From Macrostomum lignano (taxonomy: Eukaryota), in assembly GCA_002269645.1 (NCBI GenBank), contig NIVC01000374.1, positions 248,001 to 312,000 of the forward strand: a stretch of 64,000 bases of DNA, written 5' to 3'. Shown one piece after another: positions 16,201 to 19,200 of this stretch; within the stretch, counting starts at the first letter, position 1; each line of letters opens with the position of its first letter. The position numbers were made by a program, and so were the translations under genes. Under the pieces are notes generated by a model. That model saw only the letters and a list, made by a program, of their open reading frames with translations, did not search any database and had not been told where the DNA came from.

Positions 16201-19200
16201 ACTGACCACTTGCGGACGCCAGCCGGTCGGGCACTCGCGATACCTGCCACACCCGAGCTCCTTCTTAATCTGCTTTTCCACAGCCTCGAAATGCACATTG
16301 ACAGAATGGTAGTTGTTAACATCAATTGACTTGCAGTCAGAAACAGTTTTGTTAGTTATACGAAAACCATATGCAACACCATCGAGAATAAACTTCTTCC
16401 GATCCATAGGCAAATCAATACACAACAGCTCCTTCTCCCACTCCACGAACCTCAAATCTGTAGATAAAACGGGGACGTTAAAATCACTACGGGCACTTAG
16501 TCAGTGCGAGGGCCTGGCCGTCTCGATACCCACGCCATCCCGGTGGGCAGCCGCTTCTGAGTGGCCTAGACCGCACCTCCGGCATTGATGAGCAAACTTG
16601 CAGTTTCTTCTGCTGCAACCGGCTTCCTTATTGAAGTCAAAGCACACAGGCTGCTGGCTCCGCTTCGACAGTCTCTCTGAGGCAGTCGGACCCCTCTGTG
16701 GTGCCATCAGGTAGGCGGCCACCAGACCCATGTCGGAGGCTCCGGCTTCCCAAGAGGTAGTAGCTGTCTGGCTTATTCTGCACTCATCGTCGAATCTCAT
16801 GACGCGGGTCTTCTCGAAACCAAGGTCAAAAAGCTCTCCTATCCGAATATTAAAGCGCAGGTAGTCTCGGAGCTCAGAAACATCAGGACATTCTCCTTCA
16901 CCGCTCTTAACTAGAGCTCCATCATCCAGCATCTTCAGCATTATGCGCGCATTGCCAGCAATCCAGTCGCCAAAGGTCAGAGATTCTAACGCTGCCTCCT
17001 TCACTTTGTAGACAACTTTACCTGTCCGATCAACAGACTGGATGATACCCGCTTCCTGCTGCTTGCGTTTACAGATGAATTCGGGGATGCGGTAGGTACC
17101 ATGCGGGATCGCTGGTCTAGCTGACTCACTCCCTGATATCACGTGACCAAACAACTCACCATGGTTAGTTGAGGGAGCCCGGTGCCGCTGCAATAGGTTA
17201 ACCTCGGCCTGCAGCTCGGCTTCTTCCTTGCGCAGTTTCAGCAGCCGTATACGCTGCTCGACTTCCCGCACCTCGTCGTCCAGGCCGCCAGCCGCTCCAG
17301 ACTCTGACGCCGCCGTCGCAGCTTCGCCGTCCGCCGCAGCCGCCAGCAAATCTTGAATGTTCTTCGAGCGAGTCGTCTCCGGGGTCAGTGAAGGTCTGCG
17401 ATCATCGCCGTCCTGCAGTTCTGTAACGCTGTCGATGTGTGCAGACAGCCTCTCCAATAGCTCCATTTTGTTTCCGTGGGTTGGCAGGCCTAGGCATTGC
17501 AACCTCTCGCGCAGTGACTTGACAGTGTCAGTGCTAGCCATGATTCAGCGATTGGCATTAGAGTTCAGTGCAAAAAGAACTGCGCGAAAACACTGCCAAC
17601 GCAGCAGCGCGGCTGGAGTAAAATACCCCCCCCACCGGCGGAGGGGTGGGCGCCCACCTAAACAACACAGAACGTACACACGCGGCGGGGGGGGGCGCAC
17701 CACAGACGCAGCGCACTTGGGCACTAAAGCCGGTTTGCTCAAGGCAAGCCTAGCGCAAACCGCAGCCTTTGTACTATTTTCATATAATGTTAACATATAT
17801 TAAAACGAACCGCTCCAGGCGTAGCCAAAACGTCGGTAGTTGCAGTTGTTGTTGACACAGTTGTCATGGCAACAGATGTTGAAGTTGAGTTTAATGAAGA
17901 TTGCTTCTGCTGCTGCTGTTGAGACTGGGCCCCGGCGCCGTAGAATCTGGGCGATAGCAGGGCGTGGTGAATCTGGTCGCAGACGCGTTTAAAACGTCGC
18001 ACTGGGCCTGTGTGTGGATTAAATTTAAGTTACATTTTCTTGAGACTTTACTAACAGTAGAAATAGCAGTGAATAAAGTGAAATCACGGCCAAGGACTCA
18101 CCTGAGATCAGCTGGAAATTGACAGCAAACAGCAGTCTGTCCGGGTCAGGCCGGTGAATTTCTACCTGGAATTTCACCGGTCGATTGCTGAGCGAAGCGG
18201 CCGCGGCCGCGGCAGCCGCTGGTCGGCGCAGTTCGGCTCGAAAGGACATCGGCGACAGGACCGTGTGAATCAGGTCGGGCGTCTGCAGTAGGGCGTGAAC
18301 TAGGTCGGCTTTCACTCGATTGAGGGGCCGGTCACGGATCAGCACCACGTGACTGCCAGAGGAGGCGTCGGCTGCTGCGGCAGCGGCGGCCACGGCGGCT
18401 GCGGCACCGGAGGCGGCGGAGTTGACGCTTGACGCAGCCACAGCGGTGGTGGCCGGCGGTGCCGCTACTGACTGATGCTGATGCTGATGCTGCTGATGCT
18501 GCTGCTGCTGTGGTGGTGGAAATTAGGGCATTTTCTCTAAATGAATCGATGTACTTTTTATGGATTTGGACTGGGATAACATTGGATAAAGGATGAATTT
18601 AATTATTAAAAATACAGTTGATTTAAGGGTTGATTTAGGGGCGGATAGGGGCAGAAAGAGGGTAAGTTGGGGGCGAATAAATAGGTAGGATGGGGGCGGA
18701 TAAGGGGTAGGTTGGGGGCGGATAAGGTGGTAGGTTGGGGGAGGGATAAAGGGGTAGGTTAGGGCGGATAAAGGAGTAGGTTGCGAGGCGGATAGGGGGT
18801 AAATTGGGGGCGGATAAGGGGTACGTTGGGGCGGATGAGATGTAGGTCTGGGGCGGATAAGGGGTAGGTTGGGGGCGGATAAGGGGTAGGGGCGGATTGG
18901 GTGTGCGCGAATAAGGTTTAGCTCAGGTTGGAAATGAAGAGAAGCTCACTGAGCTCCTCTGATGCTGCTGCTGGTGACCATGGCCGTCGTAATGATGATG
19001 ATGGTGGTGACCTCCGCCACCAGGCAGGAAAGCGGTGAACCAAGATCGGCGAGACAATTCCGGACTGGCTTCCGGCGTTGTACCGGAAGCGAGCGCAATG
19101 GACTGTTGGTGTTGATGATGCTGGTGATGCTGTTGCTGCTGCTGCTGCTGCTGTTGTTGCTGCTGCTGCTGCTGCTGTTGCTGCTGCTGTTTGCTACGCC

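Follow-up and report, generated by a model that had tools for sequence, protein, structure and literature searches.

The gag/RT junction of an Ngaro-type element

The DNA analysed here, referred to throughout as the window, is a 64,000-nucleotide stretch of contig NIVC01000374.1 (positions 248,001 to 312,000) from the flatworm Macrostomum lignano. On its minus strand lies a young tyrosine-recombinase (YR) retrotransposon of the Ngaro type, in which gag, a reverse transcriptase/ribonuclease H (RT/RH) frame and the YR frame are flanked by split direct repeats in the order A1 - gag - RT/RH - YR - B1 A2 B2 (Table 1). This report concerns the junction between gag and RT/RH, where both open reading frames (ORFs) lie in one frame and are parted by a single UGA codon.

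Table 1. Position of the features of the Ngaro-type element, numbered from the first letter of the window
Feature	Position	Strand	Remarks
A1, 5' copy of split direct repeat	17572..17772	-	201 nt match to A2
gag ORF	16504..17541	-	346 aa; ATG at 17541, followed by TGA 16503-16501
SAP domain, gag N-terminus	17434-17526	-	residues 6-36; Pfam E=6.8e-07
CCCH-type finger, gag C-terminus	16588-16644	-	residues 300-318; motif located by position
C-x2-C-x3-H-x5-H motif in gag	16543-16584	-	motif located by position
Candidate recoding site CAC UGA CUA	16498..16506	-	stop 16503-16501, CTA 16500-16498; direct reading
AUG-free spacer	16408..16500	-	31 codons, from the stop to the first in-frame ATG
RT/RH frame	14797..16500	-	567 open codons; ends at TAG 14799-14797
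RVT_1	~16083-15664	-	residues 140-279; Pfam E=4e-11
RT_RNaseH	~15363-15070	-	residues 380-477; Pfam E=6e-4, under Pfam cut-off
U_UUU_UUA heptamer in RT frame	14941..14947	-	exactly where the -1 recombinase frame opens
Tyrosine recombinase frame	13862..14947	-	-1 relative to RT, 50-codon overlap; no ATG near start
B1 repeat	13719..13783	-	65 nt, 100% identical to B2
A2 repeat	13523..13723	-	match to A1
B2 repeat, 3' end of element	13408..13472	-	identical to B1

The split direct repeats fit the Ngaro arrangement A1 ... B1 A2 B2. Over 201 nt, A1 and A2 were found to differ by one substitution and two homopolymer length differences, and a 50-nt T-rich spacer separates A2 from B2; the near identity of A1 and A2, together with the identity of B1 and B2, indicates that the insertion is young. 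Pfam searches across the gag, RT and YR frames identified RVT_1, RT_RNaseH and Phage_integrase in addition to the SAP domain of gag, and detected neither an aspartic protease nor a DDE integrase. No methyltransferase was detected by Pfam after the RNase H, the RT/RH frame ending ~90 codons past the RNase H match, and absence of this domain separates Ngaro from DIRS1-like and PAT-like elements. No further copies of the element were found inside the window by blastn and tblastn, and no exact match to its gag or RT was retrieved by sequence look-up. The closest named homologues were M. lignano gene models; these, with metagenome and Logan contigs, are the relatives compared below and are 44-65% identical to the window element. 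Identity over RT/RH was 61% to P0002, 65% to P0017 and 64-68% to P0004.

On the minus strand the junction reads GCC AGG CCC TCG CAC TGA CTA AGT GCC CGT AGT GAT TTT AAC. As the preliminary description of this DNA had proposed, the gag TGA is followed directly by CTA and the frame then remains open through the whole of RT/RH; gag, the stop codon and RT/RH do sum to the 914 codons that it gave for a fusion protein. All of its coordinates were confirmed, but its implication that the RT ORF ends in TGA was incorrect, the actual terminator being TAG. The first in-frame ATG past the gag stop (16407-16405, MDRKKF) lies 31 codons downstream, and 19 ATG triplets are found between the gag ATG and this position, which argues against leaky scanning to an RT start codon. 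For a single element the arrangement is unremarkable, as an in-frame relation is expected by chance in 1 of 3 cases and an open spacer of 31 codons with a probability of (61/64)^31, ~0.23. It is the conservation in relatives, described below, that makes the junction more than chance.

Conservation of the junction and its counterparts in sister lineages

Junction DNA was available for seven members of the clade that shares the SAP-containing gag, including the window element. The stop was kept in five of these and RT lay in the -1 frame in the other two. Conservation of TGA-CTA and of the in-frame arrangement, the check proposed in the preliminary description, was borne out. L001 (gag 54% and RT 61% identical to the window) reads QQH TGA CTA GGC and L090 (RT 65%) reads LQH TGA CTA GAC, both in frame with RT. 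L087 (gag 56%) reads PTQ TGA CTA GGC, its contig ending 13 open codons past the stop and before RT. L085 (gag 52%) reads PSH TGA CAT GAG, again in frame with RT, compared with PSH TGA CTA AGT in the window. The sequence CAC-TGA-C is invariant in the window, L001 and L085. In L086 and L088 (44% each), the two members with RT in the -1 frame, the heptamer A_AAA_AAC directly abuts the gag TGA.

At the protein level, the spacer that separates the stop from the first ATG is conserved. A motif, FN..(I/V)LSTDLR..W, is common to L001, L085, L090 and the M. lignano models P0001 and P0003, and the earlier claim that the first ATG of the RT frame falls inside a conserved N-terminus was upheld, since the LSTDLR..W residues upstream of the ATG are kept in relatives. 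Over this 15-codon motif the relatives carry six to seven synonymous codon changes with respect to the window, and L001 and L085 differ by four (for example TCT/TCG/TCA, ACA/ACT/ACC, GAT/GAC and TTG/CTG/CTC). The position of the methionine near the start of RT is not conserved; it is elsewhere in L001 and there is none in this region of L085. Retention of the motif despite synonymous change indicates protein-level selection on the N-terminus of RT, in the frame of gag. Judged from these alignments, the conserved RT N-terminus starts 5' of every available start codon.

Metagenome contigs, scanned by pattern, yielded 80 Ngaro-like loci, of which ~50 had a classifiable junction, the rest being truncated or decayed. 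For each locus the RT frame was located by tblastn, followed upstream to the first in-frame stop, and gag was sought in all three frames. A single in-frame stop was the commonest junction, seen in 30 loci including the window (19 TGA, 11 TAG and no TAA). The preliminary description took overlap in different frames to be usual for YR retrotransposons, but among the Ngaro-like elements examined the in-frame arrangement is not unusual. RT was in the -1 frame in 13 loci, 11 with A_AAA_AAC and one with G_GGA_AAC, in the gag frame and 7-43 nt before the gag stop. In a further six loci RT was in the +1 frame, and all six had the sequence CCN CGU UUU CGU, read in the frame of gag and ending 12-51 nt short of its stop. 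No intact locus among the ~50 had a continuous gag-RT ORF.

The in-frame stops share further features. TGA was followed by C in 14 of ~20 junctions (the 19 surveyed and L085) and TAG by G in 9 of 11, and CTA after TGA recurs in four separate lineages. In 28 of the 30 in-frame junctions the stretch from the stop to the conserved W lacks an AUG. The gag stops of the two frameshift classes were TAA in nine loci, TAG in eight and TGA in two, and the difference in TAA between the in-frame and the frameshift classes was significant (Fisher p=4.5e-5). As the frameshift classes do use TAA, its lack in the in-frame class is not compositional. In a neighbour-joining tree of the N-terminal halves of RT, the readthrough and -1 classes were interspersed, the +1 loci formed one clade, and the identity of the stop was conserved within deep clades.

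The frameshift junctions carry candidate signals like those of known programmed ribosomal frameshifting (PRF): counterparts of the -1 site X_XXY_YYZ and of the influenza A PA-X +1 site, UCC_UUU_CGU, are found in the Ngaro relatives and not in the window. UUU_CGU is the site of the +1 shift that gives PA-X (PMC3498833). With a stop or a canonical frameshift motif at every class of junction, the constant feature appears to be a recoded Gag-Pol fusion. Synthesis of the polymerase by programmed recoding, in the form of a Gag-Pol fusion, is the most likely reading of these data. If used, CGU_UUU_CGU would be the first UUU_CGN +1 site known to us in a retroelement.

The loci with RT in the -1 frame and A_AAA_AAC are L010, L012, L015, L018, L023, L026, L030, L049, L053, L055, L057, L086 and L088. 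L003, also with RT in -1, has G_GGA_AAC in the gag frame, and L052 is the sole -1 locus without an in-frame heptamer. The +1 loci (L008, L009, L014, L016, L017 and L028) are monophyletic and share the peptide PPRFR at CGU_UUU_CGU.

Readthrough of the gag stop and the alternatives

The best explanation of the window junction, and one that we consider probable, is context-driven readthrough of the gag UGA, giving a minor Gag-RT/RH fusion. RT/RH, having no start codon in a usable position, would be made by translation of the full-length RNA, joined to the C-terminus of Gag. Among stop codons UGA is the leakiest, and termination is weaker when a C follows. At the gag UGA most ribosomes would terminate and release the 346-aa Gag, and a minority, aided by the weak UGA-CUA context, would decode the UGA by a near-cognate tRNA and continue to a product of ~914 aa; the residue placed there would, as in other systems, be Trp, Arg or Cys. 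The expected output would be a large excess of Gag with a few percent of fusion, which would set a high Gag:Pol ratio and, in the manner of retroviruses, carry the polymerase into assemblies of Gag. As the element encodes no protease, RT would presumably act while still fused to Gag. In HEK-293T cells UGA-CUA alone gives ~1.5% readthrough, and UGA-CUAG in its best context gives up to ~31% in human cells (PMC4132726).

The closest parallels are the vertebrate genes OPRL1, OPRK1, AQP4 and MAPK10, which have UGA-CUA(G), that is the same stop and 3' nucleotides, and need no 3' structure. They differ in that the Ngaro extension is a whole 567-aa polymerase and not a short tail, that the host is a flatworm, and that the window copy has A and not G at position +7. 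The alphavirus nsP3/nsP4 junction is similar in its UGA-C context. The gag-UAG-pol junction of murine leukaemia virus (MuLV) resembles the Ngaro arrangement in having gag and pol in one frame, a single leaky stop and a minor Gag-Pol product, and several Ngaro relatives have UAG-G, as does MuLV. MuLV, however, requires a 3' pseudoknot (PMC4132726), whereas the window element has no significant 3' structure, and the Ngaro elements have no protease to free RT from Gag. The Ty1/copia element Tca2 of Candida albicans also has gag-UGA-pol in frame and expresses pol from the gag-pol RNA (PMC2194720), but is a long terminal repeat (LTR) element with a protease and an integrase, and its mechanism is non-canonical.

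Several observations weigh against simple readthrough at this site. The window has UGA-CUA-A and not the optimal UGA-CUA-G. The 124 nt that follow its stop fold worse than shuffled sequences (z=+1.86); with 100 nt the z values were +1.36 for the window, +1.99 for L001 and +0.91 for L085, and the mean over 31 junctions was +0.44. The stable and conserved 3' structure that marks MuLV-type readthrough is thus not found in the window element, which suggests readthrough of the context-driven type, not the MuLV pseudoknot type, with an efficiency depending on local context alone. The counts by locus are not phylogenetically independent and represent roughly 12 clades, for which the TAA frequency of the frameshift classes gives (0.53)^12, ~5e-4, for absence of TAA. 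An AlphaFold model of RT with the spacer, based on a five-sequence alignment, had a mean pLDDT (predicted local distance difference test score) of 72, and the helix predicted upstream of Met32 (residues 15-26, pLDDT 45-66) is too weak to serve as evidence. M. lignano uses spliced-leader trans-splicing for many mRNAs, which makes a separate RT mRNA conceivable. Lastly, the flanks of the Tca2 junction gave no readthrough in a yeast reporter and held a cryptic promoter (PMC2194720), so that in-frame gag-UGA-pol anatomy need not mean simple readthrough.

The trans-splicing and the Tca2 data bear on the possibility that RT/RH is translated separately from the ATG at 16407, by internal initiation, by reinitiation or from a trans-spliced or subgenomic mRNA, the frame relation to gag being incidental. 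That an ATG is found 31 codons past the stop, and that the Tca2 junction holds a minor internal promoter (PMC2194720), would be in keeping with this. A protein begun there would, however, lose the conserved FN..LSTDLR..W segment that has been kept through synonymous change, and the methionine itself varies in position, being absent before the conserved W in nearly all of the in-frame relatives. Independent translation would also leave the avoidance of TAA, the bias to C or G at +4 and the slippery heptamers of sister lineages unexplained, and we regard it as unlikely. Slightly less probable still is a non-canonical bypass of the stop through distant or host-specific signals, for example splicing out, hopping or editing of the UGA, routes that were also left open in the case of Tca2. 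The lack of 3' structure at the window junction would be compatible with such a bypass, yet the restriction to UGA and UAG, the +4 C or G and the recurrence of CUA in four lineages are the signature of context-driven readthrough (PMC4132726), and there is no plausible intron around the stop, where the sole GT...AG pair spans 10 nt.

The TGA might have been a private nonsense mutation, gained by chance in a dead copy whose gag and RT were continuous or otherwise arranged. This copy does hold a true nonsense codon in its recombinase (TAG 14404-14402), and one relative, L089, has a junction without a stop. The two stops differ in kind: the recombinase TAG replaces a conserved W and has the look of a private mutation, whereas the gag TGA is shared at the same codon position by L001, L085, L087 and L090 at 52-65% identity, a divergence which rules out copies of one mutated lineage. 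With a single in-frame stop, never TAA, at 30 diverse junctions and a continuous gag-RT ORF in no intact relative, this alternative, which the preliminary description had named among the possible refutations, was excluded, and we attach very little credence to it. L089 (P0064) had been considered as a continuous gag-RT ORF and was set aside as a 5'-truncated, decayed and uninformative copy. The fused M. lignano models P0001, P0003 and P0026 were likewise discarded as evidence for a sense codon, because they skip the stop region or change frame and are prediction artefacts. Least credible of all is decoding of the UGA as selenocysteine, for which it is the codon, or as a sense codon in a variant genetic code. 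Related families have UAG at the same place, each element has exactly one in-frame stop and this at a domain boundary, no family of selenocysteine insertion sequence (SECIS) elements was matched in 13300-17900 (Rfam, E<=1), and termination is normal elsewhere in the element, RT/RH ending at TAG and the recombinase at TGA.

For the Ngaro group as a whole we lean, by a small measure, towards a polymerase made only as a recoded Gag-Pol fusion, with repeated switches at the junction among three recoding devices. The commonest of these would be readthrough at UGA-C or UAG-G, the others being a -1 shift at A_AAA_AAC and a +1 shift at the PA-X-like CGU_UUU_CGU. Gag-pol readthrough is well known in gammaretroviruses, and some LTR retrotransposons have been proposed to use it too. 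Within the literature searched, which did not include the original 2004 Ngaro paper, no description of readthrough, an in-frame gag stop or slippery sites was found for Ngaro or DIRS elements. The authors of that paper reportedly also discovered Tca2, and may well have noted the in-frame stop arrangement already. The accounts of Ngaro and DIRS elements describe a gag-like ORF1, RT/RH, YR and split direct repeats, and say only that the ORFs frequently overlap (PMC9210276, PMC6681497, PMC8547959). More interesting than the window junction itself is the pattern across the group, with its three modes of recoding, which may be unreported.

Protein expression by YR retrotransposons is essentially unstudied, reviews mentioning only overlap of ORFs. 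Should Gag-Pol recoding prove general in Ngaro elements, the annotation of their RT ORFs, which lack a start codon, must change, as gene finders cut off the conserved RT N-terminus or invent introns (e.g. A0A1I8ID48 and A0A1I8JHK6). Related elements would then be solving one Gag:Pol ratio problem by readthrough, -1 PRF or +1 PRF, a natural series in which the evolution and replacement of recoding signals could be studied, and the question would arise of how RT works when permanently fused to Gag in the absence of a protease. M. lignano is a transgenic-capable model, so that reporters can be assayed in the host itself.

Recombinase frame, gag and genomic surroundings

The recombinase frame, which matches Pfam Phage_integrase at E=3e-4, under the Pfam cut-off, terminates at TGA. 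L001 has U_UUU_UUG (3089-3095) at the same N-F-L codons as the U_UUU_UUA of the window, and this heptamer may be a second recoding site (-1 PRF) giving Gag-RT/RH-YR in the family of the window element. Such a heptamer in the RT/YR overlap is absent from most other Ngaro-like loci with YR in -1, and canonical -1 PRF was rejected as a general route to the recombinase; YR lies in the RT frame in 12 loci.

The in-frame TAG breaks the core of the recombinase. Its position is occupied by W in P0001, P0003 and P0004, relatives reading CCWWGM(L/F)R(K/R)SS, and the segment WWGGMLRKSS in the +1 frame of L001 also has W there. By this comparison it looks like a private TGG-to-TAG mutation, and the copy is probably unable to integrate on its own, despite its near-identical repeats.

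Gag homologues (P0008, P0009, P0010, P0051 and P0097) were 44-56% identical to the window gag. SAP is a DNA- or chromatin-binding motif and is also present in the gag of M. lignano and Logan relatives; the Ngaro/DIRS literature examined contained no mention of a SAP domain in Ngaro gag. The domain may have a part in nuclear targeting or in the choice of integration site. An upstream ATG (17556-17558, minus strand), 14 nt 5' of the gag ATG, opens a 22-codon upstream ORF that overlaps the gag start in a different frame. The only Rfam match, to fiv_FSE inside gag, was discarded as sub-threshold (E=0.29, 21 bits against a cut-off of 53 bits); none was obtained for the region 3' of the gag stop.

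Among the sister lineages, the 100 nt 3' of TAG-GAT-A in L034, L038 and L075 gave z values of -3.3, -0.95 and -1.9. This was the only clade to hint at a hairpin, and it may represent a structure-assisted UAG-G type, closer to MuLV.

In the M. lignano models P0001, P0003, P0004 and P0026 (UniProt A0A1I8ID48, A0A1I8JHK6 and others), Ngaro gag, RT and YR are fused with unrelated flanks, and the models pass the gag stop or switch frame via predicted introns. Such fusions are artefacts of annotation that arise from the recoding sites.

Elsewhere in the window, a host exon on the minus strand (44424-45506) encodes Sec7, PH_9 and PH domains of an EFA6/PSD-like Arf guanine nucleotide exchange factor, and shares 98% identity with M. 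lignano A0A1I8HUK0 and 62% with a paralogue, which marks the host as M. lignano or a very close species. Dense tandem-repeat arrays lie on both sides of the element, at 11000-11300, 11966-12616, 18620-18906 and 19659-19988, the repeat units measuring 23, 30/34, 22 (G-rich) and 33 nt. An ORF at 18923-20116 is of low complexity, rich in poly-Q and poly-H, and has a weak TFIIA-like match.

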